Below are positions 1 to 52,190 of a stretch of DNA of 64,000 nt, piece after piece. Position numbers and translations under genes: made by a program. The DNA is taken from IMG/VR virus record IMGVR_UViG_3300028592_000004, positions 124,001-188,000 of that record; one strand, given 5' to 3'. The notes beneath the pieces were generated by a model. It was given only the letters and a program-made list of their open reading frames with translations. It did no database searches and was not told the origin of the DNA. Within the stretch, counting starts at the first letter, position 1, and every line of letters begins with the position of its first letter.

Positions 1-96
1 TGACACGCCTTCGATGGGAAGTCCCAGATCCAGGAGGTGCCGGTGAAGGTCCTGAAGGCGTCCACCCAGTTTTTCCAACTCAGCTGAGATGCTCAC
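1..96 (-). CDS. Hypothetical protein, N-terminal fragment running off the window
   Basis: GTG start overlaps the fibre gene stop (GTGA); reads [32 protein letters not shown], open to position 1. Confidence 0.5.
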
Positions 97-1967: not shown

Positions 1968-1975
1968 CCTTGCCT
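1962..1975 (-). promoter_or_regulatory. CsrA/RsmA-type hairpin over the fibre start codon
   Basis: AGGC-AAGGAT-GCCT; loop overlaps the ATG. Confidence 0.55.
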
Positions 1976-1976
1976 C

Positions 1977-2924
1977 TCAACAGGAAACGCACCCCCGATC
2001 CCCGAGCGTGCTTGCCAAGATTGTATTCTCGAACTGAGAAACACGCCCACTTAGAGTGTTGACCAGGGTTTGTAGCGAGCGAGCCTGTTCGCCCAGCCTG
2101 TTGACGTCTTCAGTGATCTGTTCCAGGGTTGGACAGCCGCAGCACGGTTCCGCACAGCGATCTGTCAGTTTGAGCCCGTTCGTTGCAGGCTCCAGGTTGA
2201 GGCAGCCGACGCCGACGAGAGTGAACTCTCCTTCTGGTGTCGGCGGCACGTCATTGATGGTTCGAATCGGCGGTGCCTCGGCGTCGCTGTCGTCGCAGAT
2301 GCACTCGTTGTTGAGTCCCTCACCTTCGATTGCGTCCCACCGAATCCGGGTGGGCTGGTTCGTGACGACGATCGGCGTCAGTCGTGTGTTGTTGCCGGCG
2401 GCGAACTCCAAGTCCCCGTAGTACCGCGGCGATGTTTCGCTTCCATTCACCACGCGGAACGAGGAGATGCTCCGGATCATCGGCCGGATGCAGTCCTGGT
2501 CGAGGCAGGCTCCCTCAAAGGTGAACAGGTACTGCCCGGCCGGCAGCGCGTCGATCTCGTTCGTTTTCCCGATCGCGATCTTGCCGATCGTGTCTTCGAA
2601 GTCGCCGGTCCCGATAAGGGAGTAGCTGGCGTTCTCGGTGTGCGTGGAGCGTGGTACGGTGACCGAGGCAACAACCGGATTCGTCGCCCCGTCGTAGTAG
2701 GAGACCGTGATCCCATATCCGGTCCCGAAGAGCACGATCGAGCTGATGAAGAACTGATCTGGCTCGACGGCCAGTCCGGCGTGAACAGGCAGGTACAACG
2801 CCACGAGGAACGTGTTCGGGATCATGAAGTCCCCGGACGTGTCCAGACGCGTTGCGTGGCTGGCAATGGGATAGGGCCGGAGTCCATTGACGTCCGGCCA
2901 GCCAGCTCCCCAGTATCGGGCCAT
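1977..2924 (-). CDS. Putative baseplate/fibre-associated structural protein with Cys-rich C-terminus
   Basis: TAAGGAG RBS; position in tail module; CAEPCCGC motif followed by a predicted coiled coil. Confidence 0.55.
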   Translation of the reverse strand: MARYWGAGWPDVNGLRPYPIASHATRLDTSGDFMIPNTFLVALYLPVHAGLAVEPDQFFISSIVLFGTGYGITVSYYDGATNPVVASVTVPRSTHTENASYSLIGTGDFEDTIGKIAIGKTNEIDALPAGQYLFTFEGACLDQDCIRPMIRSISSFRVVNGSETSPRYYGDLEFAAGNNTRLTPIVVTNQPTRIRWDAIEGEGLNNECICDDSDAEAPPIRTINDVPPTPEGEFTLVGVGCLNLEPATNGLKLTDRCAEPCCGCPTLEQITEDVNRLGEQARSLQTLVNTLSGRVSQFENTILASTLGDRGCVSC

Positions 2925-2933
2925 GATGTCTCC

Positions 2934-4706
2934 TTACGAGCCCGAGATGATCAGGCGTCCGCGGATGATGCCGATCTCGCCCGCAAACGCGTCCAGCGAA
3001 GACCGCTCCACGGTGATGTAGACGGCATCGCCAGCCGCGACGGCGAAAGCCGCACTGTCTACGTCGAAGTAGGAATCGGCCGTGACGGCGATCTCGGTAT
3101 CGATCGTCATGGACGTGTCCGCGGTGGGCAGGGCGGTGGCCGTCGTTTCCCGAGGTAGCCGGCGATAGGCCGCAGCCAGCTCCGGGAACGTCCCTGCCGA
3201 CTTGGAAAGGCACGTCAGTCGCAGGATCGCCGTGGGCGTGTTGGGCAGCCCCGCACTCGGCACCGAGAACTGCATGCGGATGGCGGAGTCTCGCCCTGCG
3301 CGGAAGCCGATGAACGGAATGTCGTCGTCCGACCGTTCGACAGCGTCGCCCAACCGGGTGATCTGCGGATGCAGGTCCCGTGCGAAGGCGTCAAGATCGG
3401 CGTTGATCGTGACCGTCCCCTGATGCCCGCCGTTATTCGCGATCGGGTTCGTGGAGGAAAGGGTGATGTTGGCGCCGGCAACCAGCTTCTCAACGACCAA
3501 TCCGCGGCTGAACGTAACGCCGTCCAGGGACTTGAACACGGTAGCCCCGGACACGAGCGTGTTTGAGACCAGGAACTCCAGGTCCAGGTCGATGACCAGG
3601 GCACCCGTATCGGCCTCTTCACCGTCGCAGTTCAGGATCCGTAGCGGCGAGCCATCTGCCGCCTTCAGGCTCGTCACGACACTCCGACTCGTGGCGAAGG
3701 TCATGGTCGTGTAGACCAGGACCAACTTCATCTTCTCCGTTCGCGGGCATTCGATCGAGCCCAGGCTGCTCTCGGAGAGGCTTTCTCCACTGATGAAATC
3801 GGTCGGCCACGGTACATCCCCGTAGCAGTCGCTCATCCACCAGATTCCGTTCCGGTCCATAACGACCAGACCGTCGAGACCCTGGGGAACGAGCGTGCCG
3901 CCAACGCGGTCCGCGCCCTTGTCCCAGAAAAGGGCGGCACTTTCGACAGGGATCGGAGGCCAGATCCGGCTGAGCGCAGGGTGTGCGGCGAGGTTGTAGC
4001 CGAAGGCGGCTCCCGCCGGGGCGAGCCCGTTGAAGGAGTCGTCGCTGGCCGGCAGCCAGCCGGGGACCGCTTCGTCCGCGTTCGTGATTTCGTGCCGCTG
4101 CCCTTCGGCCGGCGGGGCGTGGTCGCCCGCGGGCTCCGCGACCAGCTCCACACGAAAGTGGATGTGGTCCTCCATGAAGTCCTTCAGCGTTGGAAGGACC
4201 GAGACCTGTCCGTTGCCCAGGTTGTAGGCGACAGGAACGGAAACCGCGGGTCGCTGCGGCGTCAGTTTCCCGGGCGTCTGCGTGGAGAGGTAGAGCCGGC
4301 CGGCAGTGTCCGGGTCATCGACCGTTGCTGAGAGATCGATGGCGCTGAGACCCAGCGCGACGATGTCCGCCAGCTGCGAATTGTGCTTTTTCCGGACGAT
4401 GCCGATCACGTCAGCGCTGGGGCTGATCACGAAGGCTCCGGTCTCTTCGTCCAGAACCGCCTGAGCCAACGCCAACTCGAACTGCTGCGTCTCGCTGTTG
4501 TAGTAGACCGCGGAGCCGATCAGTACGTCGGACTTGACCGTCTTCTCGTACAGAATGACGTTCTCGCCAAGCTCCGCAGCATCTTGCCGGTACCGCAAAT
4601 AGGCAGACCGGGACTCGTTATCCCGGTCCGGTCGACTGACAACGCTGGCATTGACCGCCTCGCCGTCCCGGACGTGGCGGACATTGCCCGGCCATGTGTT
4701 TGCCAT
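2934..4706 (-). CDS. Putative virion structural protein (baseplate periphery)
   Basis: 590-aa acidic, beta-rich ORF in the tail module; start taken at MANTW. Confidence 0.55.
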   Translation of the reverse strand: MANTWPGNVRHVRDGEAVNASVVSRPDRDNESRSAYLRYRQDAAELGENVILYEKTVKSDVLIGSAVYYNSETQQFELALAQAVLDEETGAFVISPSADVIGIVRKKHNSQLADIVALGLSAIDLSATVDDPDTAGRLYLSTQTPGKLTPQRPAVSVPVAYNLGNGQVSVLPTLKDFMEDHIHFRVELVAEPAGDHAPPAEGQRHEITNADEAVPGWLPASDDSFNGLAPAGAAFGYNLAAHPALSRIWPPIPVESAALFWDKGADRVGGTLVPQGLDGLVVMDRNGIWWMSDCYGDVPWPTDFISGESLSESSLGSIECPRTEKMKLVLVYTTMTFATSRSVVTSLKAADGSPLRILNCDGEEADTGALVIDLDLEFLVSNTLVSGATVFKSLDGVTFSRGLVVEKLVAGANITLSSTNPIANNGGHQGTVTINADLDAFARDLHPQITRLGDAVERSDDDIPFIGFRAGRDSAIRMQFSVPSAGLPNTPTAILRLTCLSKSAGTFPELAAAYRRLPRETTATALPTADTSMTIDTEIAVTADSYFDVDSAAFAVAAGDAVYITVERSSLDAFAGEIGIIRGRLIISGS

Positions 4707-4714
4707 CCTTGGCA
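4701..4714 (-). promoter_or_regulatory. CsrA/RsmA-type hairpin over a start codon
   Basis: TGCC-AAGGAT-GGCA; loop overlaps the ATG. Confidence 0.55.
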
Positions 4715-4722
4715 CCTCAGAG

Positions 4723-5316
4723 TTAGAGTTCGCGAGCGAACTTCAGGCGATAGGTGATCGTGTGCTGGGCGTTCGGTTGCTTCAGGGCCTGATCCGCAAC
4801 CTCGAAGTAGCTGCGGGCGAAGATCAGGTCCTGGGTCTGATCGGCCCAGACCGGCGCCGCGACGATGGCAACCCCGCAGATCTTGCTGTTGACGGCGTCG
4901 GAGAACTCCTTGCCGTGAACGCCGGTCGTGCCGGACGTCGTCGCGTACAGCAGGGCACCATTCCCGTGGTCTGCCGGCATCTCGAAGCCGTCCACGACAA
5001 ACAGGGAGGGTTCGACGTCCAGGGCGATCCGCAGGAAGTCGCGGTTCGGGCTGCCGGAGAGGTTGGCGAAGTACTCCAGGCCGCTCGTCTCGTCGAACTC
5101 CGGAACGGTAACTTCGTCCTCCGGAGCGTCGACGTTTTCGAATTCGATGTAGGCGGCATTGATGACGTAGTCGGTGTCACCAAGGCCCAGCACGCGGGCC
5201 GCGATGGCACCCCACGTGTCGAGCCAGATGTTCTTGCCGCTGAACAGGTAATCCCGTCGACCGGTGAGGTCGCATCGCCGGAAGACGTCGTAATCGCCCT
5301 GGCCGATCCGCTTCAT
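4723..5316 (-). CDS. Putative baseplate/tail-collar structural protein
   Basis: GAGGA RBS 5 nt before MKRIGQ; follows the baseplate wedge genes. Confidence 0.5.
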   Translation of the reverse strand: MKRIGQGDYDVFRRCDLTGRRDYLFSGKNIWLDTWGAIAARVLGLGDTDYVINAAYIEFENVDAPEDEVTVPEFDETSGLEYFANLSGSPNRDFLRIALDVEPSLFVVDGFEMPADHGNGALLYATTSGTTGVHGKEFSDAVNSKICGVAIVAAPVWADQTQDLIFARSYFEVADQALKQPNAQHTITYRLKFAREL

Positions 5317-5336
5317 TTCAATCCTCGGGTATTGAC

Positions 5337-6818
5337 CTACTGACACTCGATTCCGACCGTCCGGATGCCCACGATGTCGTCCGCAGCGAGAGCGGGAGCG
5401 GAATCCGCCAACGGCTCTTGTGCCGGCCCGATATCGAGCTCGTCGTTGTCAGCAATCGTAGCAGAGTCGCTGAGTTCGGGCATCTCGATGATCACGAGCA
5501 GGTAGTTGTGCGGTGGAACGATCCGTCGCAACGATTTCGTCCATTGCAGTCCCACCCCGGCGCCGAGGCTGCCACAGCGAACCTTCAGCAGCAGCGCGTT
5601 GTTGGTCAAGACGTTCTGGACCAGGAACTCCAGTGGATTGACCGTTGCCGGCAGCGTCAGGGCACTGGGCGGAGTCGTGGGTTCTTCCCGTGTATCGAGG
5701 AGGCCGGCCAGGGTGTAGCCGTAAGCGTCTTCCTTGGATTCCAGATGTCGCCAGAAGCGGTCCACATCCAGCGGGTGACCTCCCAGGTGGAACCTGACCC
5801 GCACGGTCTCCTCGGAGTCGTCGATGAGCAGCGGCACGTTCCGGTTGAAGAACAGCAGCGAGTCGTTGTAGCCGCCCGGTAGCAGATTCCTGTCCAGGCT
5901 GATGCAGGTGACGTCCGGAACGGCCTTTCGGTTCAGCTCGAACAGCTGGACCGTGTCAACCAGGAAGCTCCCCGCCGGCAGGACATCCCCGACCGAAACG
6001 GCGGGTGTCGCGTTTTTGGGGAGCCTGTAGGCATGTGCGGTTGTCGCGATCACGAGGTGATCCGTCATCACTTTGACGACTTCCACCGTCTCTTCCGGTT
6101 CCCGGGTGACCGGGACGCCCGTGATGGCGCTAACCGTCTCCCGCAGGGTCTGGCTGGAGGAGCCGCCGGTCAGGGAGTCCATCAGACCGTTCACGAGGCC
6201 CTTGTAGGCGTCGCTGGAGGGGGCCTGGACGCCCAAGACGTAGCCGTAGTGGCTGTAGAGCGTCTGGACGTCTTCCTGGGCCGCGTAAGCCCACAGGACG
6301 ATCTGCCAGTCGGTCTGCTCGCCGGCCTCGTTGTAGATCGGCAGCCGCGGGATCCGGTCGTCGTCGAAGGGGTCTGTACGGAAGGTCAGCAGGGACCCGT
6401 CGTAGGTGTAGTCCAGCCCGGAGGTCCAGAGGACGGTCGGATTGACCTGCTGGGTCGTCAGGAACGGAAGCGCGGCCCACCGTCCGACGCTGAACGTCAG
6501 TGGGTTGCCCGTGGTTGCTCCCAGGAGCCCGGGAGCGTTCCCTAGCTCTCCGGCCGCACCAAGGAGGTAGGGCACAGCTCCAGCGTCGCTCTGACGTAGC
6601 CGGATCGGAGTCCAGTTCTGACGCCGCAAGACCGGGCAGGTGAGCCGGCTCTGGGTGTCGAACATCTCCTTCGAAGCCTGGGCCGTCTGCAGGTAGGCTT
6701 CTGCGACAGCGGTGGCGTAGGCCAACACCTCGCCCCGACCTTGGAAGGTATGGGACCAGAAGCTGCCGATCAGGCCCGGGAGGATCTCCGGAGTCTGCAG
6801 TTGATTCTCGGGATACAC
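5337..6818 (-). CDS. Putative baseplate wedge subunit
   Basis: Directly follows the J-like gene; ends in LRRIVPPHNYL, resembling the wedge 'xxP(A/P)H' terminal motif. Confidence 0.6.
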   Translation of the reverse strand: MYPENQLQTPEILPGLIGSFWSHTFQGRGEVLAYATAVAEAYLQTAQASKEMFDTQSRLTCPVLRRQNWTPIRLRQSDAGAVPYLLGAAGELGNAPGLLGATTGNPLTFSVGRWAALPFLTTQQVNPTVLWTSGLDYTYDGSLLTFRTDPFDDDRIPRLPIYNEAGEQTDWQIVLWAYAAQEDVQTLYSHYGYVLGVQAPSSDAYKGLVNGLMDSLTGGSSSQTLRETVSAITGVPVTREPEETVEVVKVMTDHLVIATTAHAYRLPKNATPAVSVGDVLPAGSFLVDTVQLFELNRKAVPDVTCISLDRNLLPGGYNDSLLFFNRNVPLLIDDSEETVRVRFHLGGHPLDVDRFWRHLESKEDAYGYTLAGLLDTREEPTTPPSALTLPATVNPLEFLVQNVLTNNALLLKVRCGSLGAGVGLQWTKSLRRIVPPHNYLLVIIEMPELSDSATIADNDELDIGPAQEPLADSAPALAADDIVGIRTVGIECQ

Positions 6819-6819
6819 G

Positions 6820-8469
6820 TCAGTCTCCGATCAGGGCGACGTTCTTGACCGTGATGGCGATGTCCTGCGGATCGAGGAGGATCGCCGTCGTGCGGCCGGT
6901 GATGTACTCCGCAGGAAGATCCGGAATCCACATCTGGTCCCGGTTGCGGGTGAAGACCGTCCGCCCGATCGGCGAAAGGATCCGACCGAACATGTCCATG
7001 TTCGAAATCGCCATTTCGCCGGACAGGAACGGGGCCGCGGTGCTGACGATCGTTGATGCGTGCAGCACATTGACGAAGCCCAGGTTGTTCACCTTGTCGG
7101 CGATGGCGTTAGCGATCGCCGCGGTGTCCGGGGTCTCCTGAGTCGTCGACTTGCTGATGTCGAACTGGACGGTCAGCAGGCAAGGGATAGCGGCCTTCAC
7201 CAGTACGTCTCCGGCCGGTCCGCGGACTGCGCGGCCGCTGATGTACTCCTGCAGTTCCGCCACCAGCGGCATGTGCCGAACGATGACGATGTACTCGGCT
7301 GTGCTGCTGTTCACCGTCAGACTGTCGGTGTTGGTCACCGTGTCCGTGAACCGGACGACCGCGGTCTGGAAGGGGCTGAACGCCGCCTCGTAGTCCTGCT
7401 CGATGTCCGGCTGCCATCCTGATCCCAGCGCGAAGCCCCGCGTAACGCTGTCAGCGTCGAAGCGGTTGGTCTCGCTCACGTCGCTCTGCTGGGTGATCTG
7501 GACGACCTCATAGAAGCCAGGCGCATCGTCGACGTCGATCTCGAACTGCCAGACACCGCCGACTGCCTTCTTCTCGATGAGGGTGGCCATCTTCGTGATG
7601 GCCGTCAGTCGGGCAATGTTCTGCGAACGCATGTAGATGTCGCAGCGTCCGCCCAGCGAGGACGGCCAGATCGTGTGCCGGTCGCGATTCATCTCCGGGT
7701 CGCCCATGCCGATGATGGAGATCCCCTTGATGTCGGCGAACTCTTCCTGGGCGCGAATCATCGCCGACGTTGTGGTCCGGTTGGACCAGGCTTTGACGGC
7801 TGCTCCCTCGTTCAGGCGGGTCAGCAGGTCTGCGTTCGTTTCGGCATCGACGCCGTTGACGAAGTCCGACTCTGCGTACGCAGTGACGAAGTTCGGGATG
7901 TTGATCGCCGGAACGAGCGTGGCAGCCCGCCGCAGCATTCCCTCTTCTCCGACCGTCTGGGCCGTGATCGGGACACTGAAGGCGTACCGGCCGTTCCCGA
8001 GATCCGTCAGCGCCCGGTCAGTCGGAAGCGTGATCGCCGCCTCGGTCGTTCGGATGGCGTGGACAGCCTGGGTGGCGAACGAAATCCCGTTCGCGTTGAA
8101 GATCGCTCCGTTGGGGATCGTCAACGGCAGGAGCTTGCTGACGACGACGGTGACGTTTCCCGTGGCCTGCGAGCCGGTGTTCCGCGCAACACGGTAGTTG
8201 CTGAGGATCGCGTCGACCGTGTCTTCGTCCGCCAGGGACGGGTCTTCCGAGATCTTCAGCAAGCTGCCGGAGTCGGTGTATCGGCGGATATTCGTGTTGG
8301 CGACACCCTCATTGAGGATGCCGGCCATCAGGAGCACCGCGTCTCCGATGAAACCGCCGCGGGTGTGGATCTGCGGATACAGGTCCCCCAGCATCTGCGC
8401 CAGGAGATCCCGCGTGGCGAGGACGTCGTCGGTTGGAAGGGAGTTCAGATCCGAGACAGCAGTCGGCAT
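6820..8469 (-). CDS. Baseplate J-like (P2 gpJ / T4 gp6-type) wedge protein
   Basis: R..GSQATGNVTV...IPNG..F and F.NG.DAET..DL..R segments typical of Baseplate_J. Confidence 0.8.
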   Translation of the reverse strand: MPTAVSDLNSLPTDDVLATRDLLAQMLGDLYPQIHTRGGFIGDAVLLMAGILNEGVANTNIRRYTDSGSLLKISEDPSLADEDTVDAILSNYRVARNTGSQATGNVTVVVSKLLPLTIPNGAIFNANGISFATQAVHAIRTTEAAITLPTDRALTDLGNGRYAFSVPITAQTVGEEGMLRRAATLVPAINIPNFVTAYAESDFVNGVDAETNADLLTRLNEGAAVKAWSNRTTTSAMIRAQEEFADIKGISIIGMGDPEMNRDRHTIWPSSLGGRCDIYMRSQNIARLTAITKMATLIEKKAVGGVWQFEIDVDDAPGFYEVVQITQQSDVSETNRFDADSVTRGFALGSGWQPDIEQDYEAAFSPFQTAVVRFTDTVTNTDSLTVNSSTAEYIVIVRHMPLVAELQEYISGRAVRGPAGDVLVKAAIPCLLTVQFDISKSTTQETPDTAAIANAIADKVNNLGFVNVLHASTIVSTAAPFLSGEMAISNMDMFGRILSPIGRTVFTRNRDQMWIPDLPAEYITGRTTAILLDPQDIAITVKNVALIGD

Positions 8470-8472
8470 GGA

Positions 8473-8919
8473 TCACACCAGGGTCTGAATCGTCGGCTGC
8501 AGCTGGTAGCTGGACCCGGCGAGGGAAGTGACGTGGAAGAAAAGCTGAACGTATCCAGGCAGGATAGCGACCCGGTCGAGAACGATCTCGTCGAGGCGTT
8601 CGTCCAACTCGTCAGTATCAAGCTCGCGACCCTGCAACGTCTGCGTAGTCCGAGCGGCGGCGAAGCCGAAGGCCTGGAAGACATCCAGATCACTCTGGAC
8701 CTCTCCGCGGGCAAAAGCCCCGATCAGGTTCGTCCCACCCTCGACGTACGGCGAGGAGGCCTGCTCATTCAACAGGTCCGTCAGGACCAGCTGTGCGAGC
8801 TTCTGGATCCCTGTGCAGCCGAGCCCGCCGTCACCGGGCAAAGCAAGCGCCTGCACAGTCGGCTTCATCACGCCGGGTACGAGATCGCGCTGGAAGATGA
8901 GTAGATCGTAGGTTCTCAC
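8473..8919 (-). CDS. gp25/gpW-like sheath-initiator baseplate protein
   Basis: 148 aa, GIQKLAQ...LL...DERL signature, immediately before baseplate J. Confidence 0.65.
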   Translation of the reverse strand: MRTYDLLIFQRDLVPGVMKPTVQALALPGDGGLGCTGIQKLAQLVLTDLLNEQASSPYVEGGTNLIGAFARGEVQSDLDVFQAFGFAAARTTQTLQGRELDTDELDERLDEIVLDRVAILPGYVQLFFHVTSLAGSSYQLQPTIQTLV

Positions 8920-9356
8920 GAGGACCCCGCCTGAATTGTGTCTTCGACGTACTTGAGGACGCCGCCTTCAAAGATCCCCTTCGCATTGGCGTGCCCACGA
9001 CGGGCTGAGGCCGCGTGAGCCAGGGCTCGGACCGGCGTCAGCCGGCTGGCGCGAAAGGCACGCTCGGCGTGGGCCACGTAGCCGTTCTGCTCGGCCAAGG
9101 CGATCTCGTCACCAACCGTTCCCGGAGAGGCATCATCCGCGATGACCTCTTCGTAGTTGGCGCCAATCTCGGAGCGATCGAAGGGAGTCGTGATGCTGCC
9201 CAGGTCCAGCGGGTTGCCTTCCCACTCGCCCGGGTTCTGCCAGACCCGCTGCTCCTGATTGCGCAAGGCTCCCGAGATCTTGCCGGCCTGTTCAACCAGG
9301 TCGGTGATCAGGTTCGAGAAGACCTCGGAAACGCGTGCAACGCTCTTCGCTTTCAT
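8916..9356 (-). CDS. Hypothetical protein
   Basis: 146-aa ORF with 4-nt overlaps to both neighbours. Confidence 0.6.
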   Translation of the reverse strand: MKAKSVARVSEVFSNLITDLVEQAGKISGALRNQEQRVWQNPGEWEGNPLDLGSITTPFDRSEIGANYEEVIADDASPGTVGDEIALAEQNGYVAHAERAFRASRLTPVRALAHAASARRGHANAKGIFEGGVLKYVEDTIQAGSS

Positions 9357-10102
9357 ACGACCCCCAATCCGTCCAGTTCATCGACCTGAGCCTGGATGCG
9401 AGCCATACGCTGGCTGATCGCACCCGGAGAAAGATTCAGCTTTCGCGCCAGCTGCTTGCCGGACATCTTCTGCTGACCGTTCAGTCCGACCGAGTGCTCG
9501 ACCAGAACCTGATCGACCGGATCCAGATCGTCGTAGATGAACTGGATCCGATGCAAGAACGCGTCCGGCCCCATCACGCCAGGCTCGAAGCCGAAGCCTT
9601 CGTCGTCTTGTCCGGATTCGGAGATCTGCCCTTCTGTCACAGCGGGCCGGGTTGAACGGACGTAGGCGATCCGCTTCGGAGAGAAGCCGGTAAAGTCGGC
9701 CAGCTCCGAAATGGACGGCGAGCGGGAAAGCTGATCGAACAGCTCGTTCTCCGCTGCCGCTAGGGCTGCACCCTCCTGGGCGACTCGCTCTGGAACGTGA
9801 ATCAGTTGATTCTGCTGCGCAGCGTAGCGCTGAAGCCCCTGTAGCGAGGCCATGAGGTGCGTCCGGAGCGAGCCCCGGCCTGGATCGTAGGAGTCGACAG
9901 CGTTGGCGGCGATCAGACGCGCCCGCCCTTTGAGCTGAGGGCTGTTTGCACCACCGCCAAAGGTCCGCATGCCTGTCTGGATGATCGGGTCGACGGCCTT
10001 GACCATCGCTGTCCGCCTGGACGGGGACTGGTTCAGCTTGTAGGCCCGATACGGCTCACGGAACTCATCCTCCAGGTTCCCAAAGTCGAAGTTGCTCATC
10101 AC
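9353..10102 (-). CDS. Sigma-70 family RNA polymerase sigma factor (alternative/group 3-like)
   Basis: Region 2 (AVDSYDPGRGSLRTH..IHVP), region 3 (LSRSPSISELA) and region 4 HTH (MSGKQLARKLNLSPGAISQR). Confidence 0.85.
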   Translation of the reverse strand: MMSNFDFGNLEDEFREPYRAYKLNQSPSRRTAMVKAVDPIIQTGMRTFGGGANSPQLKGRARLIAANAVDSYDPGRGSLRTHLMASLQGLQRYAAQQNQLIHVPERVAQEGAALAAAENELFDQLSRSPSISELADFTGFSPKRIAYVRSTRPAVTEGQISESGQDDEGFGFEPGVMGPDAFLHRIQFIYDDLDPVDQVLVEHSVGLNGQQKMSGKQLARKLNLSPGAISQRMARIQAQVDELDGLGVV

Positions 10103-10107
10103 GCCTC

Positions 10108-11727
10108 CTACGTTTCTACGAGCTTGCAGCCTGAGAAGGTCTCATTGTACAGCGGATGCTTCTCGATTGAGGTCTCGTCGGAGGTGTTCTCCTCCTCATT
10201 CCGCATGTAGCCGATATGGTAGGCGGTGCCGGCCATACCGCTCTCGGCATCGAGATAGACGGACACCCGCAGCACCGTCCCGAAGTAGTTTGCACCGAGT
10301 GCGTCATTGGCGATGAACGCTTCCGACGAACCTTCGATCTTCACCGTTGAGCCTGGGGCGATGTCCAGGCGGAAGGGACAGCTGATGCTGGCCTGCCGGT
10401 CGCGGAGTGTCTCGATCGCATAGGCCGTCTTGGCGTACTCGTCCAGGAACCGCTTGACCAGCCTGACGCGGTCGTTTGCCTTGTCCCTCGGAAGATCGGC
10501 AGGAGCGGTGCCGGCGCCAGGACTGTCGGTCGTTCCACGGAGCTTCTGCTTGCCGCCGGACGACTCCCCGGCAAACCGCGAAGCGGACAGAAGGCTGCCC
10601 ATCCAGCGGGGACCCTGCCGGATCTGCACCATGCCCTTCTCCCGCGGCTCGAACCAGCCGCCGACACCCAGCAGGCCCATGTCGACGATCGCGTCCATGC
10701 TCTGGTCGACGACCCCAAGCCGAGAGCTGATCTGCGAGAGGATTCCCATCGCCCGGAACGGTCGCTCGGACAGGAGCTGAGACTGGTTGACGTTGTAGGT
10801 GCCGGCCGGGATGTAGTCGAACTCCTTCCGGTAGCCCGGCACGAACGGCACGATCAGTCCACCCTTCGTGCGGGTGACGACCGAGAACATGTAGTCCTGA
10901 GCGAACCGGCCGACGATCAAATCCCAGAACGTGAAGCTCCCGATGTCGTCCGGGCTGGCCACCGTCAGGCTGATGTCCTGCATGATCTTCGATGCCAGGT
11001 CGTTGTCGAAGTCGATCCCGACGCCCAGCTTCTTGTAGTCGTCTCCGGTCGGCGCCAGCAGTGCAAGGCCCGCCGCGGCTCCGTCGTTCTTGCCGCTGCC
11101 TTTGAGACCCACCTCGTCGACGAAGATGGCATCGACTTCTGTCAGGTTCTGGAAGAAGGGATAGAGGCAGGAGCCCCACAGGTCCTCTTTGAGTTTGCCT
11201 TGGTCCACGTACGGCGCGGCGAGCGTGGATCCCGTCCAGTGGCGGGCACCGGTCCGGGTGTCCGGCATCAGAGCCCCGTAGGAGTAATGGGTGGGGTTCC
11301 GCGGATGGGACGAGTCACTGAAACAGGACGAGTTGTTCAGCTCGGACAGCTTATGCGTCAACTGAAGCGTGAACTCGGCGTGCGAGGCTTCGATCGCCAT
11401 CGTGTCGCCGACGCCGGCCGTCAGACCGTCGAACAGAAGGAACTCTCCCTCCGGGATGCCCAGGTCGACCTTACCGCCCGGGGAGAATGCCAGCCGGTCG
11501 AGCCGAGCATAGACCTTCGCTGGCAGCTGATCCCGGAGAGCAGTCGCGATGAGATGGACTTCGGACGGCTTGAGGCTTTGAGTGTCTCGACCAAGCGGCA
11601 GAGACACCGACGCGACCGGGATCCCGTTAAGGTCCCAGGACGCACGGACTCCTACGATCGGCAGGCTCTTGCCGTCGATCTCCATCCGACATTCGACCTT
11701 GCGGTAGACCCAATCTGTACTAGGCAC
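10108..11727 (-). CDS. Putative baseplate hub protein (gp27/gpD-like)
   Basis: Position after tape measure; C-terminal ..PFRLDIAPGSTVKI..G.V..V barrel pattern; GTG start after GAGGAG. Confidence 0.6.
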   Translation of the reverse strand: MPSTDWVYRKVECRMEIDGKSLPIVGVRASWDLNGIPVASVSLPLGRDTQSLKPSEVHLIATALRDQLPAKVYARLDRLAFSPGGKVDLGIPEGEFLLFDGLTAGVGDTMAIEASHAEFTLQLTHKLSELNNSSCFSDSSHPRNPTHYSYGALMPDTRTGARHWTGSTLAAPYVDQGKLKEDLWGSCLYPFFQNLTEVDAIFVDEVGLKGSGKNDGAAAGLALLAPTGDDYKKLGVGIDFDNDLASKIMQDISLTVASPDDIGSFTFWDLIVGRFAQDYMFSVVTRTKGGLIVPFVPGYRKEFDYIPAGTYNVNQSQLLSERPFRAMGILSQISSRLGVVDQSMDAIVDMGLLGVGGWFEPREKGMVQIRQGPRWMGSLLSASRFAGESSGGKQKLRGTTDSPGAGTAPADLPRDKANDRVRLVKRFLDEYAKTAYAIETLRDRQASISCPFRLDIAPGSTVKIEGSSEAFIANDALGANYFGTVLRVSVYLDAESGMAGTAYHIGYMRNEEENTSDETSIEKHPLYNETFSGCKLVET

Positions 11728-12490
11728 GCGTGCGGCGCTCCTCAAGACGATAGGCGTACGCCAGGATGAATCCGCTCAGCGCCACGACATCCACAGGGGA
11801 CTGAGACGCGTTGCGGAGTGACTCCCAAGGCTCATCATGTCCGACTCCGAACAGCTCCAGCTGCACGGGCTCCGGCACCTGCCGCATGATGCGGGAGATC
11901 TCGGAAAGGTCCACTTCGGGCCGAACGAGCTGCGACAGGACCCAGCTATCCCCCGTTGAGGCATTCTCGCTGATCCGAATGAACGTGGGCGACAGTGGTA
12001 GCTGAACCGGAGTTGACCAGCCATCTGGCTGAATGACTGTCAGGGTGGAGTCTCCGTCGATCTCGATCTCGAACAGGCCGGGCGTATCGTCCAGCAGACG
12101 GACGATCCACTGAAAGTCCATCTTGCCGCCGGTCTGCGTGTACGTCGGCGGCTCTCCATAGACCGTCAGCTTGGTGGCGTCTCCAACGTCGACCGCGGGA
12201 AGCGGCGAATCCCAGGTAGTCGAGATCTGCGTCGGGTCGTACGACACCCGGCTGTCCAGCTCTGCGACCAGGTCTCGCAGCGGACTGTAGTGGAGCAGCG
12301 ACATGAACTGCTGCAGCCGATAGTTCCGTGCGGCGCGATCGGCCTGACGTCCGAACAGGATCGAATCGACCGTTCGGAGAGCCGAGGAGCGAGTCACCGG
12401 CCGGAAGTCGACCGGAACGTACTCCTCTCCGTAACGACTCTGAGTCGTTCCCGGCAGGTTCAGCAGCAGCGTGCGAATGTGGTTGATCAT
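11720..12490 (-). CDS. Hypothetical tail/baseplate protein
   Basis: Start taken at MINHIRTLLLN (ATGA overlap with upstream gene); 256 aa. Confidence 0.6.
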   Translation of the reverse strand: MINHIRTLLLNLPGTTQSRYGEEYVPVDFRPVTRSSALRTVDSILFGRQADRAARNYRLQQFMSLLHYSPLRDLVAELDSRVSYDPTQISTTWDSPLPAVDVGDATKLTVYGEPPTYTQTGGKMDFQWIVRLLDDTPGLFEIEIDGDSTLTVIQPDGWSTPVQLPLSPTFIRISENASTGDSWVLSQLVRPEVDLSEISRIMRQVPEPVQLELFGVGHDEPWESLRNASQSPVDVVALSGFILAYAYRLEERRTRA

Positions 12491-12987
12491 GTTCCGGTCC
12501 CGCCTCCCGACGAGCGACGCTGCGGCATCGCGCTGAATTCCAACCCGAACTGCGCGATCCGGCTCTCGGGCTGGATGATGTTCACGCTGAGTCGGGTCAG
12601 GAAGCTCACGAAGTTGCCAGACGGCGTGGTGCCAATCTGGATGTTGATCGGGGTCGGGCGGCGGGCAATCGAGTTCCGGTCGTAGTATTCTGCCACCCGC
12701 TCGATGCCGGTCTTCGTGCCGTTTCCGGGACAGATGTCCGAGAAGGAGAGGCCCGCCACCCGGATCCGGCCGATCTTCTCTCCGAAGACGTAGAGATGGA
12801 TCAGGTCCTTGAGGGTATGAACGAACTTGAAGTTCCCCTCGCGCTCGATGGCCATCTGGGTGATGATGCTCTTCTGGACGAAGAACTGCCGACCACTCCA
12901 GCCGTCGAACGAGACAGGAACGGGGATGTCGCCCTCCGTGCGGAAAGCGACAGCTACCCCGGGCTGCGTTTGAAAGATCATCGCCAT
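12487..12987 (-). CDS. Putative tail-tube initiator / tube-like baseplate protein
   Basis: 166-aa beta-rich ORF directly after the tape measure gene. Confidence 0.55.
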   Translation of the reverse strand: MAMIFQTQPGVAVAFRTEGDIPVPVSFDGWSGRQFFVQKSIITQMAIEREGNFKFVHTLKDLIHLYVFGEKIGRIRVAGLSFSDICPGNGTKTGIERVAEYYDRNSIARRPTPINIQIGTTPSGNFVSFLTRLSVNIIQPESRIAQFGLEFSAMPQRRSSGGGTGT

Positions 12988-12989
12988 AG

Positions 12990-15900
12990 TTACTTGATCG
13001 GCTCGTAGCCGACGCCTCCTGTGACCCGTCCTGGGTAACGCTGACCGTTGATCTCGACCGTGATCGTCGTACCTTGAGCCAGCCGCACCGTCTGCGGCCG
13101 GGCAGTCTGGGAGTCGACGTTTTCCTCGTCTTTCGGACGAAGCGATTTGACTGTCTCGGAGATGTAGGAGCTGACGACCTGCTCGCCAGTTCCTTCACCG
13201 CCCTTGCCGACTTCGCGGATGCGGAGGAGCCCGGAGGCTTTCCGCCGGAGCTCATCGGCTTCTCGTCCCTGGACTTTGTCGACGCTGACGCCCTGGTCCT
13301 TGGCCATCTTGTCGAGGCGTTCCTTTGCTTCGACCGCCTGGTCCAGTTCGCGACGGGCTGCAGCGGCGTCTTCTCCGGATCCCAGCGAGTCAGCCAGCCG
13401 CTTCGCTTCCTCGTCGCTCATTCGCGATCCGGTGGTCTTCACGACACGCTCGATCGCTTCCGCGTTCAAGTCGTCGTCCGATCGCCGGTTCTTCGACTGG
13501 TAGTCCTTGAAGCGATTCCGCTCCTCTTCGGTCATCTTCGGTCGGGCCGAGGGATCGAGCTTCATCTTTTCCTTGACGGCTCGCATTCCGCTCGTGATTC
13601 GCTCCTGGATCGCGAGTGCCTCCTTGTCGCCAGAGGCCAACAGATCCTGCACCGAGTTGAAGCCCTTCTTGCGGGCCATCAGTTCCAGCTCCGAGTAGCC
13701 CTCGTATGCCTTCTGAACGAGATCGAAGCCACCGGCACCAAGCTGCTCAATGGACGCCTCGTCGTTGAGCATCTGGCTGACGAGCTTCTTGCCGGACACG
13801 AACTGATCCGCGGACCGGGTGAAGATGTCCTTCCCCTCTTCTGTGTCCTTGGACCCGGAGCGGACCCCGTCGAGCGTCCGCTCGCTTGCCGCCATGATCT
13901 CTTCGATGTCCTGCTCTCCGACTTTGACCTTGGTGTTGTAGCCAAGATTGCCGGCGCGATCGTCGTACCCGCCTCCACCGGCGAGCTTGAGAGCCAACAG
14001 GCGGCTCTTGAGTTCGGGCGGCGTGGTGGGGTTGCGGAGCAGGTCGTCGATCGAGTCCGTTCGCTTGGAGCCGTTCGCGTTCGGGTTCGCGGCGAGGTAC
14101 TCCTCCCGGACTCGCTCCGCTTCGGTCTTGGCAGCCTCGCCGCCGGCCCGCAGCGCCGACACCGAGCGGGAGATCGACTCCTGACGCTGGGCTCGCTTGG
14201 CGGGATCCTTCTCGGTGGCCGCAATGTTCTCGTACTCCTTCTGCAGGGCCGTCATCTCGTAGGCCTGCAGAGCCAGAGCCTCCCGGTCGCCAACCTTGCC
14301 TAGCTCCTTCGGGTCGATCTTCGCGATCCGCTTCATGATCTCGACAGGGTCCTGGACGTTCAGGATCTCCGCGATCGCACTGCCGAAGTCCTCAGTTGGA
14401 TTCTGGATGACGTCCGACAGCCGACGAAGCGGACCGGACTGTCCGAGCCCGGCGAGCGCCTTGCGCATTGTTGCGTCGACGCGAGCCTGCTGTGTCTGCA
14501 CCTGCTGCCGCTTCATGACTTCTGGATCCATCAGGTCCAGCATGTTCTGAGCGGAGTCGGCCCACTTGTAGGCCGGATCCTGACGAATCCGCTGCTCGAA
14601 GTCGCCCCATCCAGTGATCGCCGCGTCGAGGGCCTGCTGGTCCGTGATGGTGATGCCACGTTCAGCGAAGGACGTCTTGATCTTGTCGGCAAGGATCTTG
14701 TTGCGGCGCCCGGCCACACGGCGGTCCTCGGCCGACATCTCCTGCAGCGTCTTGGCGACAAGCGGCGAGACAGCACCGGCAGCGTTCCGGGCATCCTCGG
14801 TCGAGGCTCCCGCAGCTGTCGCGGCTCCGACGAGCCCAGCGTTCATCTCCTGAGCAATCAGCCGCTGGATGTCGCGACCTTGGAGCTGCCGGACAATGTC
14901 CGAACCGCCGAACTTGAACGTGTACTCCTGGTTGGAGTACTTGTCCATCAGAACGGAGTTTGCCGTCCGCGGATCGAGGCCAGACTGCTCAGCCAGGGCC
15001 ATCCACTTGGCGTTGTCCATGTCGACGGACATCTTCTCGCCGGTGATCGGATTCACGAACTCCGTCTGACCGTTGCGGATGGCGTCGGCCAGAGCCGCCA
15101 GCGGGGAGCCTTCCTTGAAGCCGCGCTCCTCGGCGAGCCGCATCGTGGCTCCGATCTGGTTGCCGACTGTGGAGTTGGCCCCGCGCAGCCGTAGCTCCTG
15201 ATCACGCATGGTGATCTCTTCGAGTGACTTCCGGCCCCAGGCCGAGATGTCCCCACGGCCGACGTCGCGGAAGGCCGCACCGAAGGCCGCGGCGCCCTGG
15301 GTGGCCGTCACGGCGAAGACACGGTCCAGGCCGATCTGGCTGGCCAGGGCTGCACCCTGAGCGGTCAGGCCGGTCATCGCCTGAATACCCATTCCGGTCT
15401 GCGTCGCCAGCGACTGCGTGGTTCGAACGATTCGCTCCATCTCGCCCGGGGCCATCGTCGCCAGCCCGCCCTGGGTGAGCATGTTCAGCCCTTCAATGAT
15501 CTCCTTCATGGGGGCGTTCGGGCGTCCCATGTCGCCAAAGATGTCCCGCATAGCGGAAACGACGCCGGCCATGCTCTTGAGCCGGTCAGTGTTGCGGCGG
15601 ACGTCGAACATTCGGAGGTTCGCGTCGAACTCAGTGGGTGAATCCCGCCGCAGCTGCTCGATCGTCTCGATCGGCTTCTTTTCCGAATCGGCCATCAACC
15701 GATTCTGCTCTTCGTTCGAGTACGTGCCGATCGACCGGCCCATCAGTCCACGGGTTTGCATCTCGTCGTAGAGCTGACCAACCTGCCCGCCGCTAAGACC
15801 CCGCCAGCTTGTGATGTCGGCGCCCGGTCCAAAGAACCGGGACTGGATCTCGCGGGCCATGAAGCCGGCGGACTCACCCGACATCCCGATCCGTCCGGTG

Positions 15901-16406
15901 ACCGGATCGACCGCGTACCGCCCACCTTGGCTCAGGTAGTGGGCCATGACCATCGCCGAACCGCGGCTACCGTGGAGCTGATCGGCCAAGTCTGGGGCGA
16001 ACTGCACCATGAATGGCATCAGCCCGCCGATGTCGCGGGCGACACCGGACGCGAGCCGTTCCTCCTCCAGACCCATGCGGGTGCCCGTCATCTGGGCTAT
16101 CCCGCGGATCATCTGGATGTAGGTCTGCTCGTCCGCCCCGCGGGCCATCTGGACAGCCTGGTTCCGCTGATTCCAGAAGTCTTTGACCCGCCACTGGTCA
16201 AAGACGTTCTGCATCGGCATGAACTGCGTTGGCATTCCGCCGCCGGTGAACGGCGACGCCAGCATCTGGGCAAGAATGCCCAGCAGCGGGTTACTTTGGA
16301 GGGCCGGAATGTTGAGGTCGAACGGCATCCCGGGCGCGTTGACCCGACCGAACATTGGCCCGACCGCCGACCGCGCCATGATCTCCTGCAGGAGCTGCTC
16401 GTCCAT
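12990..16406 (-). CDS. Tail tape measure protein
   Basis: 1138 aa, Ala/Gly/Gln/Met-rich helical composition, no Cys, between chaperone and baseplate genes. Confidence 0.8.
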   Translation of the reverse strand: MDEQLLQEIMARSAVGPMFGRVNAPGMPFDLNIPALQSNPLLGILAQMLASPFTGGGMPTQFMPMQNVFDQWRVKDFWNQRNQAVQMARGADEQTYIQMIRGIAQMTGTRMGLEEERLASGVARDIGGLMPFMVQFAPDLADQLHGSRGSAMVMAHYLSQGGRYAVDPVTGRIGMSGESAGFMAREIQSRFFGPGADITSWRGLSGGQVGQLYDEMQTRGLMGRSIGTYSNEEQNRLMADSEKKPIETIEQLRRDSPTEFDANLRMFDVRRNTDRLKSMAGVVSAMRDIFGDMGRPNAPMKEIIEGLNMLTQGGLATMAPGEMERIVRTTQSLATQTGMGIQAMTGLTAQGAALASQIGLDRVFAVTATQGAAAFGAAFRDVGRGDISAWGRKSLEEITMRDQELRLRGANSTVGNQIGATMRLAEERGFKEGSPLAALADAIRNGQTEFVNPITGEKMSVDMDNAKWMALAEQSGLDPRTANSVLMDKYSNQEYTFKFGGSDIVRQLQGRDIQRLIAQEMNAGLVGAATAAGASTEDARNAAGAVSPLVAKTLQEMSAEDRRVAGRRNKILADKIKTSFAERGITITDQQALDAAITGWGDFEQRIRQDPAYKWADSAQNMLDLMDPEVMKRQQVQTQQARVDATMRKALAGLGQSGPLRRLSDVIQNPTEDFGSAIAEILNVQDPVEIMKRIAKIDPKELGKVGDREALALQAYEMTALQKEYENIAATEKDPAKRAQRQESISRSVSALRAGGEAAKTEAERVREEYLAANPNANGSKRTDSIDDLLRNPTTPPELKSRLLALKLAGGGGYDDRAGNLGYNTKVKVGEQDIEEIMAASERTLDGVRSGSKDTEEGKDIFTRSADQFVSGKKLVSQMLNDEASIEQLGAGGFDLVQKAYEGYSELELMARKKGFNSVQDLLASGDKEALAIQERITSGMRAVKEKMKLDPSARPKMTEEERNRFKDYQSKNRRSDDDLNAEAIERVVKTTGSRMSDEEAKRLADSLGSGEDAAAARRELDQAVEAKERLDKMAKDQGVSVDKVQGREADELRRKASGLLRIREVGKGGEGTGEQVVSSYISETVKSLRPKDEENVDSQTARPQTVRLAQGTTITVEINGQRYPGRVTGGVGYEPIK

Positions 16407-16863
16407 TCCTCTTCCTTCCTTGGTCGCGGGATGCGTCGTTGTCGACGAGCCACTGCGCCGTCTGCTCGATCTTTCGCTGGACCTCCGGATCTTCCGGGTC
16501 GCCCCAGGCGGCTACCCAGGCATCGTACAGCCGCTTGTTGGCGGATTCTTGAGCCTGATCCGGAGACTCGAATGTATTCCAAGGGAAAAGAAGCTGCAGT
16601 ATCTGCTGCAACAGACGGTAGGACTCCTGATTCAGCTTCTCGACCGATTCCTCGGTCAGATTGTCCCGGCTGAGCAGGTTTCCGTTGCGGCGATGCAACA
16701 GGTCGTACATGAAGAGTCGTTGAGCTCGGGACTTCTCCGAGATCATCAACGACACCCTCGTGTACCAGCGTCGGTCTTGGGGATCGGCTTTTGTGAAGTC
16801 CAGTGTGCCATCGGCGGCACACTGGCACATCAGAGCGGCTACACGATCCCCTGCCAAAAATCC
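16291..16863 (-). CDS. Tail assembly chaperone -1 frame extension (gpT-like)
   Basis: Open -1 frame entered at G GAT TTT near the end of the upstream gene; precedes tape measure. Confidence 0.6.
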   Translation of the reverse strand, partial: GFLAGDRVAALMCQCAADGTLDFTKADPQDRRWYTRVSLMISEKSRAQRLFMYDLLHRRNGNLLSRDNLTEESVEKLNQESYRLLQQILQLLFPWNTFESPDQAQESANKRLYDAWVAAWGDPEDPEVQRKIEQTAQWLVDNDASRDQGRKRNGRAAPAGDHGAVGGRANVRSGQRARDAVRPQHSGPPK

Positions 16864-18092
16864 GGATCCTCCATGCGAGCCTCCAGCTTCTCGCACAGCC
16901 GCTGGAACCGGTGGAAGCACGCCCCGACAGTCCGGCGGATCGACTCGGACGTGAGGTAGTGCTCGTACATCGCCTTCGCCTGCTGAGGAGCCTTCGTCTC
17001 CTTGCTGGGATCGATCTCGTCGAACTCGTTCTCAGCGATCGGTGGCAGCTTCTGCAGGCCGGTCCCGCGGAGCGAGATCGAGTCGAGCGCCATCGCCATC
17101 CGGTAGTCGGTGACCTTCTGCAGCCACTCGGCCTGGGTCGCGATCCGGCCCTGACGGGCGTCGAAGGCGATCTGCTGCAGTGCCATGTCAGATTCGGTCG
17201 ACATGAGCGTGCGGAAGGTGACCTTCACAGCCCCGCCGAGCAGCGTGAAGGTCTTGAAGAACCGGACGCCACCGAGGACCGTCTGCAGAAAGTCCCGCTT
17301 CTCGTCGACCGTGGGCTCCGTTTCGTCCGGACGGGTGCTGTCCCAGCCGCAGTGCGGACAGAGCGGATTCTTGATACCGGTGCGGTTGGCAGCGTCTTCC
17401 GCCTCCTTGAGAACAGCAACGTCCTCTTCGACCGCCACCTGGGCGTGGGCCTTCGCCGCAGCGACCTGCTGCTGTACCGGCTCTCGCACTTCCGCGACTT
17501 CAGGAACGGCTCGCGGCTTGGCCTGTGCCCGACGAACAGGTTGCGGCGGGGGCTCCTCTTCCTCGTCTTCGACGACAACGATCTCCTGGAGCTCCATGTC
17601 CAGTCCAGCCTGAATCGCTTCGTTGACCCCGGTGCCGGCCGCTTCGACGAACTTCGCACCGCGGATTGCGGCGTCCTGCTGTTTTGCGAGGTTGACGAAC
17701 TGACGAAGTTCCTTCTGCTTGTCCGGTGTCAGTCGGCGGATATCGACCGGTGCCAGTTCACTGAGGTCGTCTGCTTCAGCCGATTCCGCAGACAGGATCG
17801 GCGGCGTGTCCGGCGCAACCGGCAGATGCGAGTCGTCGTCAGCGTCGGCGATCGCTTCACTCTGCAGCTGCTGAATCATGCTGGGCAAGTTACCGGGAAC
17901 GATGTCCCCTTCCTTGATGCCCAGCTTGGCCAGCTGCTCCAGTTCAAAAGGTGTGCGGCTCTTAGCCCGCACAACCCGGCCGGGCTGCATAGGCAGGCCC
18001 TTAACCGGGCCGGGAGCCTTCTGCGTCCGGCGGATCTGACCGGCTTGAGGTGTGGTCGATTCGGGAGGTTTGCTCTTCCGGAAATCCATCAT
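16839..18092 (-). CDS. Tail assembly chaperone (gpG-like) with long low-complexity N-terminus
   Basis: C-terminal domain with VTFRTL...E; CPHC motif; slippery site near the 3' end; position before tape measure. Confidence 0.6.
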   Translation of the reverse strand: MMDFRKSKPPESTTPQAGQIRRTQKAPGPVKGLPMQPGRVVRAKSRTPFELEQLAKLGIKEGDIVPGNLPSMIQQLQSEAIADADDDSHLPVAPDTPPILSAESAEADDLSELAPVDIRRLTPDKQKELRQFVNLAKQQDAAIRGAKFVEAAGTGVNEAIQAGLDMELQEIVVVEDEEEEPPPQPVRRAQAKPRAVPEVAEVREPVQQQVAAAKAHAQVAVEEDVAVLKEAEDAANRTGIKNPLCPHCGWDSTRPDETEPTVDEKRDFLQTVLGGVRFFKTFTLLGGAVKVTFRTLMSTESDMALQQIAFDARQGRIATQAEWLQKVTDYRMAMALDSISLRGTGLQKLPPIAENEFDEIDPSKETKAPQQAKAMYEHYLTSESIRRTVGACFHRFQRLCEKLEARMEDPDFWQGIV

Positions 18093-41484: not shown

Positions 41485-41531
41485 TGCACCCATCCGTGGT
41501 GAATTGCGTGGCGGTCCGTGCCGTGAGGCCC

Positions 41532-41559
41532 ATCGTATCAGTTCGACAACGACGGGCAA
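41532..41559 (-). promoter_or_regulatory. Sigma70-like promoter with extended -10
   Basis: TTGCCC-16 nt-TACGAT with TG at -15/-14. Confidence 0.5.
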
Positions 41560-43483: not shown

Positions 43484-43725
43484 CAGAACCCTACGTCGGA
43501 CAGCGTGGGTGCGTCACGGTGACGGATTTGCACTTCCGATCGGTTGAGGCCCAGGTTACCCAGTACCTGCTCGAACCGAGGATCTTCAAAGGTGTAGGCC
43601 TGGACCAGGCCGTCTGCGAGTTCGATCGCAACCGCCACGATGGTTCCCTGGCGGTTGCGAATCACGACGCGACGAGCTTCTGCGACCTGGGGCTCAGCCA
43701 GCTTTTGGAAAAACTCGATCTGCAT
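43483..43725 (-). CDS. Hypothetical protein
   Basis: 80 aa, AAGGAG RBS, TGATG coupling to the beta'C gene. Confidence 0.6.
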   Translation of the reverse strand: MQIEFFQKLAEPQVAEARRVVIRNRQGTIVAVAIELADGLVQAYTFEDPRFEQVLGNLGLNRSEVQIRHRDAPTLSDVGF

Positions 43726-44494: not shown

Positions 44495-44517
44495 CTCGGC
44501 TTCCTTGCCAGAAGTAA

Positions 44518-48978: not shown

Positions 48979-48979
48979 G

Positions 48980-52135: not shown

Positions 52136-52139
52136 CGCA

Positions 52140-52153
52140 AGTCCTCCGTGACT
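52140..52153 (-). promoter_or_regulatory. CsrA/RsmA-type hairpin at RBS
   Basis: AGTC-ACGGAG-GACT. Confidence 0.6.
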
Positions 52154-52190
52154 GAGAAACATCCCTGTGGTCGCACTGTATCGACCGAGA

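Follow-up and report, generated by a model that had tools for sequence, protein, structure and literature searches.

A divergent sigma factor gene fixed among the baseplate genes of a soil phage that encodes its own bacterial-type RNA polymerase, with indirect evidence that the sigma is packaged with the polymerase

We first examined the gene content around a sigma-like open reading frame in a 64,000-nt stretch of DNA (here the window), which comprises bases 124001–188000 of IMG/VR virus record IMGVR_UViG_3300028592_000004, a genome of 229,210 bp that is rated 100% complete by CheckV. The DNA has 63% G+C, 284 of 291 genes lie on the minus strand according to our codon-model gene call, no alternative genetic code was needed, and a search of sequencing runs found this DNA only in soil DNA runs and in no RNA run. 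The features discussed below are collected in Table 1. The ORF spans 9353–10102 if the GTG at 10102 is taken as the start, as in the first-pass annotation, but the likely start is the ATG at 10099, which gives the length of the collection's own record of the protein (P0002). The stop codon (TAG) of the upstream gene occupies 10110–10108, so that the gap is 8 nt to the ATG and 5 nt to the GTG. At the other end, the sigma stop codon (TGA, 9355–9353) overlaps the start codon of the next gene (9356–9354) as ATGA. In our gene call, the block running from 16406 down to 93 contains no non-coding gap of 150 nt or more, and gene ends nearly abut.

Table 1. Features of the window, with positions counted from its first letter
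Position	Strand	Feature	Basis
6820–8469	−	Baseplate J / gp6-like wedge protein (549 aa)	Pfam PF04865, E 1.7e-10; PHROG 6; BLASTP to Arash gp13, E 6e-11
8473–8919	−	gp25-like baseplate wedge protein (148 aa)	Family profile hits PDB 9euf_L 'baseplate wedge subunit' through the gp25 motif, E 0.011; hhalign to Arash gp12, probability 94%
8916–9356	−	146-aa protein of unknown function, predicted all-helical, not gp25-like; start overlaps the sigma stop	Sequence, predicted structure; syntenic in relatives
9353–10099	−	Sigma70-family gene (248 aa), Cys-free, sigma2-sigma3-sigma4 by predicted fold, group-3-like and highly divergent; single copy in the genome	Profiles, pairwise alignment, predicted fold
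10104–10109	−	AGGAGG ribosome-binding site for sigma, overlapping the stop codon of the hub gene	Read directly from the sequence
10108–11745	−	Baseplate hub-like protein (545 aa), VgrG / Phage_GPD / Mu gp44-like	Predicted structure, TM about 0.5–0.58
11720–16406	−	Three upstream genes of the same gap-free block: 1138 aa (12990–16406, Cys-free), 166 aa (12487–12987), 256 aa (11720–12490, Cys-free)	No family match
16407–16838		432-nt non-coding gap, the only sizeable gap upstream of the block; inferred likely place for a promoter of the block; terminator-like hairpin at 16612–16593 on the minus strand	Gene call; inference
21421–24207	−	Tail sheath (928 aa), placing the block in a contractile-tail module	PHROG 279 and 2839
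41567–43483	−	RNA polymerase beta' C-terminal half, beta'C (638 aa), Cys-free	Pfam Rpb1_5, E 1.3e-18; PHROG 25354
44518–48978	−	RNA polymerase beta fused to the N-terminal half of beta', beta-beta'N (1486 aa); catalytic ADFDGD motif intact; no Zn-finger Cys, whole protein Cys-free; only copy in the genome	Pfam Rpb2_6, E 5e-49, and Rpb1_2, E 4e-27; PHROGs

The protein is a sigma70-family factor, but a divergent one. It matches PHROG 351 'RNA polymerase sigma factor' with an E-value of 6e-7, and phmmer against PDB sequences aligned residues 59–205 with regions 2.2 through 3 and beyond of SigA, SigB and RpoS, residues 59–110 corresponding to regions 2.2–2.4 of SigA. An AlphaFold2 model built on 27 homologs (pLDDT 87.8) shows three helical domains and a disordered acidic linker at 158–171, and its 50 best Foldseek matches in the PDB are all sigma70-family factors aligned over nearly the full length (about 225–280 columns). 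A C-terminal helix-turn-helix (PF13412, 22.8 bits against a cut-off of 21.9) was found at residues 211–234, and the recognition helix of region 4.2 (SPGAISQR) is highly conserved. In contrast, Pfam Sigma70_r3 (PF04539) scored 21.2 bits (E 3e-4), below its cut-off of 25.3, although this domain is recorded for 18 of the 27 listed proteins and the predicted fold agrees with it. Sigma70_r2 (PF04542) gave no hit at E ≤ 1 anywhere in the genome, and curated NCBIfam thresholds were not reached, since the best match, SigB/F/G, scored 36.9 bits against 234 and the general sigma70 model TIGR02937 scored 20.6 bits against 42.9. Hence the assignment of regions 2–4 rests on fold and pairwise alignment and not on curated models. 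Moreover, the region 2.3 aromatic residues with which sigma70 melts the −10 element (Y430, W433 and W434) are replaced by H81, A84 and S85, and the family consensus THLMxQLQGLxR has no aromatic pair; some ECF and phage sigmas also lack these residues, so this does not exclude membership of the family.

The observation made in the first-pass annotation, that a Cys-free sigma70-family gene is embedded in the baseplate operon directly after the hub gene and overlaps the next start, is therefore confirmed, with one correction. That annotation had placed the sigma gene next to the gp25-like gene, whereas the gene overlapping the sigma stop codon encodes an all-helical 146-aa protein, for which the ESM Atlas, Pfam, a PDB profile search and a Foldseek search with an AlphaFold2 model gave no match. 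The gp25 motif is in the following gene, which precedes the Baseplate J gene.

To see whether this arrangement recurs, we compared it with related genomes. Five metagenome contigs whose sigma is 36–47% identical show the same order of about 200 aa, about 260 aa, an approximately 550-aa hub, sigma, about 150 aa, about 150 aa and an approximately 550-aa Baseplate J protein, with tiny or no gaps. All 17 near-complete IMG/VR genomes that were chosen only for carrying the RNAP fusion have exactly one sigma homolog, the hub homolog lies directly upstream of it in all 17, and the gp25-like homolog was detected downstream in 14. The same is seen in Vibrio phage D69. The arrangement is thus not due to chance. 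Phage-database searches with the sigma protein and with 12 kb of DNA found nothing at default sensitivity, and searches for related loci seeded with the sigma alignment or the single protein gave no result; only the family profile reached Salmonella phage Arash and phage D69. It matched Arash gp10 (hhalign probability 99.3%, E 8e-21 over 216 columns; HMM E 1e-25) and an unannotated D69 ORF at the same genome position (E 7e-22), but not the other sigma of Arash, gp196. In Arash, gp10 is followed by the small gene gp11, the gp25-like gp12 and the Baseplate J-like gp13. The hub protein showed no similarity to Arash gp8, nor the 1138-aa protein to Arash gp4.

The phage encodes one detectable RNA polymerase, consisting of the beta-beta'N fusion and the beta'C subunit, whose genes lie among head and tail genes. 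A second polymerase was sought in the genome with PF00562, PF00623 and an alignment profile (A4), and none was found; a search with PF00940 was uninformative because its controls gave no signal anywhere. Similarly, no second sigma was found with PF04542, a further alignment profile (A1) or Arash Gp196, although a divergent one could have been missed. A search seeded on residues 936–1486 of the fusion returned more than 7,500 metagenome proteins, some of which may be cellular beta or beta', and at least 519 IMG/VR contigs carry a relative, many of them about 200 kb long. The closest isolates by RNAP are Arash (32% identity over 95% of the fusion) and Vibrio phages D69, D148 and D181.

Published virion data for Arash bear on packaging of the sigma (PMC10585845). 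In that work, LC-MS of virions purified on a sucrose gradient detected Gp10 with 100% coverage, 24 unique peptides and 467 spectra, alongside Gp206 (beta), which was the most detected protein with 3516 spectra, and Gp216 (beta') with 1210 spectra, while the second sigma, Gp196, is absent from the table. The table lists 116 of 272 proteins, including ribonucleotide reductase, ligase and primase, and its authors themselves allow for carry-over of abundant proteins. However, primase, ligase and one ribonucleotide reductase appear with only 2 unique peptides each, evident contaminants giving 2–3, whereas the peptide count of Gp10 is in the range of portal and baseplate proteins.

The absence of cysteine links the sigma to the polymerase. 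At the proteome Cys frequency of 1.2%, 3.4 Cys-free proteins of 200 aa or more are expected, and 14 were observed, including the RNAP fusion (P about 1.6e-8), beta'C (P 4.5e-4), the 1138-aa protein at the head of the baseplate block (P 1e-6) and sigma (P about 0.05). For sigma alone this is weak, as many small sigmas are Cys-poor. However, the sigma is Cys-free in 27 of 27 relatives and in Arash and D69, and the fusion is Cys-free in 33 of 35 relatives that are about 55% identical. Arash gp206 has 1 Cys in 1525 aa and Arash gp196 has 3, and the 146-aa neighbour is not consistently Cys-free in relatives. The giant virion RNAP of N4-like phages was reported to be 'devoid of cysteine', which was proposed as a requirement for passage through the tail and the disulfide-forming periplasm (PMC3715699).

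Structure prediction with the phage RNAP, a check proposed in advance, was carried out for sigma with residues 1015–1482 of the fusion (the beta'N part). The score was 0.80 in three runs against a best control of 0.00, a mark that was reached by 58 of 80 solved complexes and 2 of 110 mismatched pairs, although these counts hold only roughly because our own alignments were used. The runs share at least 71% of contacts and partner pLDDT is at least 75. The predicted interface joins beta' 1192–1232 (clamp helices) with sigma 25–33 and 50–65 (regions 2.1/2.2), and the best-defined contacts join beta' 1204–1228 of the clamp-helix coiled coil with sigma 26–33 and 55–65. This is the canonical sigma-core interface, but the score may come from the model's memory of solved holoenzymes, and it indicates that the surfaces are retained, not that the pair binds.

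We also searched for promoters that such an enzyme might read. Searches of 97 intergenic regions with exact k-mers, 5-mer dyads with 10–21 nt spacers, and a Gibbs sampler of width 12 and 30 found no shared promoter motif and returned only hairpins followed by T-runs, resembling terminators, and a four-copy TTTCTTT(T)AGCTAT motif. These methods were crude, so that this is weak negative evidence against a distinct class of early promoters. A sigma70-consensus promoter scan and a terminator scan of window positions 1–18000 were at chance level.

The most economical account of these observations, which we hold with moderate confidence as somewhat more likely than not, is that the gene encodes the promoter-specificity subunit of the phage's own two-chain RNA polymerase. 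In this view, the sigma would be co-translated with baseplate proteins late in infection, loaded into the virion with the polymerase core and delivered with it into the next cell, the cysteine-free composition suiting passage through the tail and periplasm, and the holoenzyme would there start phage transcription without the host polymerase. The predicted sigma70-family fold, the fixed position in the baseplate block, the single polymerase and sigma detected in the genome, their co-occurrence across the clade and the shared cysteine avoidance come from the present analysis, and presence in purified virions was shown by others for an ortholog of 20% identity. Packaging in the present phage, late expression, ejection into the host, promoter-specific initiation and a role at early promoters are inferred, and binding to the phage core rests on the in silico model only. 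The model does not explain why the sigma gene sits in the tail module while the RNAP genes sit by the head genes.

The interpretation in the first-pass annotation, that the sigma is made with late structural proteins, too late to act as a conventional late sigma, and may be packaged as the specificity subunit of the phage RNAP for early transcription in the next host, is thus only partly supported. A phage-encoded RNAP does exist in the window, and packaging is plausible on the indirect evidence above. In contrast, late synthesis is inferred only from gene packing in a genome where nearly all genes share one strand, and 'too late to be a late sigma' does not follow, because only one RNAP and one sigma were found, so that the same sigma probably also serves newly made polymerase later in infection.

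Other explanations remain possible to different degrees. The sigma may belong to the phage polymerase but act only inside the infected cell, as a general or late factor for newly made core, with early genes read by host RNAP or by sigma-free injected core and any presence in virions incidental. Some later use of the single sigma is likely anyway, its gene sits in a structural block that would be self-activating if late promoters use it, and the Arash proteome includes probable carry-over proteins. We nevertheless consider this reading less likely, as the peptide count of Gp10 exceeds that of evident contaminants, an intracellular-only factor would not need the conserved cysteine avoidance, and the other sigma of Arash has Cys and is not listed in virions. 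It is unlikely, but not excluded, that the protein, whether made after infection or injected, redirects the host core RNAP to phage promoters, the phage RNAP then using another, unrecognised initiation factor. Characterised phage sigma70-family factors (T4 gp55 and SPO1 gp28) bind host core, reviews state that sigma homologs in jumbo phages act on host RNAP (PMC7598289, PMC7824862), and known phage multisubunit RNAPs use non-sigma70 subunits such as phiKZ gp68 and AR9 gp226. However, the strict co-occurrence of sigma with the phage RNAP across the clade, the interface predicted with the phage beta' clamp helices (the phage chain alone being modelled, as the host is unknown), the shared Cys-free composition and the co-detection in Arash virions point to the phage core.

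A sigma-derived protein exapted as a structural or assembly part of the baseplate, with no role in transcription, seems very unlikely. Its position between hub and wedge genes is fixed across very divergent phages, curated sigma models are not reached and the −10 melting aromatics are lost, but the three sigma domains of the predicted fold, the acidic 3.2 linker and the strongly conserved region 4.2 helix are kept, and the core-binding helix is predicted to dock on the beta' clamp helices.

Reviews from 2020, 2021 and 2026 divide large phages into those with their own multisubunit RNAP and no sigma homolog, and those with sigmas that borrow host RNAP. The present clade has both. More tentatively, and with a probability slightly below even, a very large, mostly uncultured clade of phages of roughly 180–230 kb, including Arash and the Vibrio D69 group, may run a self-contained bacterial-type transcription system in which a two-chain core and a bona fide sigma70-family subunit, all cysteine-free, are injected as a holoenzyme. 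This would be the first sigma70-type factor dedicated to a viral polymerase and the first shown to travel in a virion, and would contradict the stated rule that RNAP-encoding phages lack sigma. The clade offers a minimal, sequence-recognisable sigma-core pair (no alpha, no omega, no zinc sites, no cysteines) for studying how sigma-core recognition and promoter melting can be rebuilt, and bears on how whole holoenzymes are delivered through a contractile tail. Arash and the Vibrio D69-group phages were isolated in culture, so that the idea is open to bench tests, and the cysteine-free signature may be a simple sequence marker for injected phage proteins.

The closest known counterpart is Arash Gp10 ('RNA polymerase sigma factor RpoS', OQ632216.1), which the Arash paper lists in passing without drawing a conclusion about it. 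This ortholog of about 234 aa is Cys-free and sits in the same place, ahead of the small gene and the gp25-like and Baseplate J genes, and Arash has the same RNAP layout of a beta-beta'N fusion plus beta'C. However, Gp10 is only about 20% identical, Arash is 181 kb, has mixed-strand genes, infects Salmonella and has a second RpoS-like sigma (Gp196) for which no counterpart was found here, and the gene upstream of its sigma is a 96-aa ORF after a 1165-aa cell-wall hydrolase instead of a 545-aa hub. The phiKZ/AR9-type jumbo-phage enzymes (virion and non-virion) are likewise phage-encoded beta/beta'-type RNAPs without alpha or omega, a virion-packaged enzyme is proposed for early genes, and a separate specificity subunit is needed for initiation (gp68 and gp226 as fifth subunits), whereas here there is one RNAP set, beta is fused to beta'N and the factor is recognisable as sigma70-family by sequence. 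The N4-like virion RNAP (gp50) is packaged in the virion, ejected to transcribe early genes and, like the enzyme here, devoid of cysteine, but it is a single-subunit, T7-like giant protein that recognises hairpin promoters and has no sigma. Phage sigmas for host RNAP (T4 gp55, SPO1 gp28 and gp34, and the sigma factors of RNAP-less jumbo phages) are phage-encoded sigma70-family proteins that re-programme promoter choice, but they act on host core, are not known as virion components and occur in phages without their own RNAP. Bacterial group-3 sigma factors (SigB/F/G, FliA/WhiG) have the domain plan of sigma2-sigma3-sigma4 without region 1.1 that the predicted fold shows here and are the best NCBIfam, PDB and fold matches, whereas the present protein scores far below their family cut-offs, lacks the region 2.3 aromatics, is phage-encoded and has a phage core as its predicted partner.

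We first considered the proteins without cysteine. Of the proteins with a length of 200 aa or more, 14 are cysteine-free against 3.4 expected, and this class is concentrated in the head of the tail block and around the RNAP genes, which may mark the set of proteins that are ejected into the host. Moreover, the β′ N-terminus of the RNAP fusion lacks the four-Cys zinc-binding domain of bacterial β′, with the consensus TGGHxGNRW in its place around residues 1055–1075 of the protein record P0029, and the whole enzyme has no zinc-site cysteines. Some relatives of the RNAP fusion, such as the protein records P0047 and P0069 (2148–2161 aa), are several hundred residues longer and carry a LAGLIDADG-type domain (PF14528), and in Vibrio phages D181 and D148 the gene is interrupted by an annotated homing endonuclease, thus inteins or homing elements appear to target this polymerase gene.

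The G+C-rich hairpin was found in four copies, each of which is followed by TTTCTTT(T)AGCTAT and lies 19–48 nt upstream of a gene start. All 10 TTTCTTT words on the minus strand of the genome are intergenic, and the element could be a terminator tail or a terminator–promoter unit. In the tail module, the 864-aa protein gave a faint DUF2345 (VgrG C-terminal) hit, and it may be a second hub or spike-like protein in addition to the 545-aa hub next to sigma. The tight coupling of sigma to its neighbours showed a single break, which was seen in one relative, a 49-kb Logan contig (L020), where a stretch without a called gene separates sigma from the next gene.

Features noted in and around the window, with their positions
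Coordinates	Strand	Feature
window 93-1967, 11720-12490, 12990-16406, 35371-37603, 41567-50059 (several genes)		Cysteine-free proteins (624, 256, 1138, 321, 429, 638, 266, 1486 and 359 aa)
window 25913 (genome 149913); genome 198346, 112635, 52675	minus	G+C-rich hairpin copies
window 44518-48978		RNAP fusion
window 18099-20693	minus	864-aa protein with faint DUF2345 hit
window 57158-59578	minus	SNF2-family helicase (806 aa)
window 51233-52204	minus	Trypsin-like peptidase (323 aa), possibly a prohead protease
window 39025-41559		844-aa protein
L006:1058-5146, genome 71058-75146, outside the window	minus	1362-aa fusion of a uracil-DNA glycosylase-superfamily domain, a 3′-5′ exonuclease and a family A DNA polymerase
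L020:10735-11249		513-nt stretch without a called gene

The SNF2-family helicase and the trypsin-like peptidase lie near the RNAP and head region. Arash has a helicase detected in virions (Gp217) right after β′C, but the 844-aa protein in that position here has no family match. Rhizobium, Cobetia and other Vibrio phages of 150–207 kb (loci L121, which is Rhizobium phage RHph_TM30 of the Kleczkowskaviridae, L122 and L123) have a related β′ but gave no hit to this sigma profile. Hence, unless their sigma is too divergent to detect, the combination of sigma and fusion seems to be limited to the Arash / D69 / soil clade.
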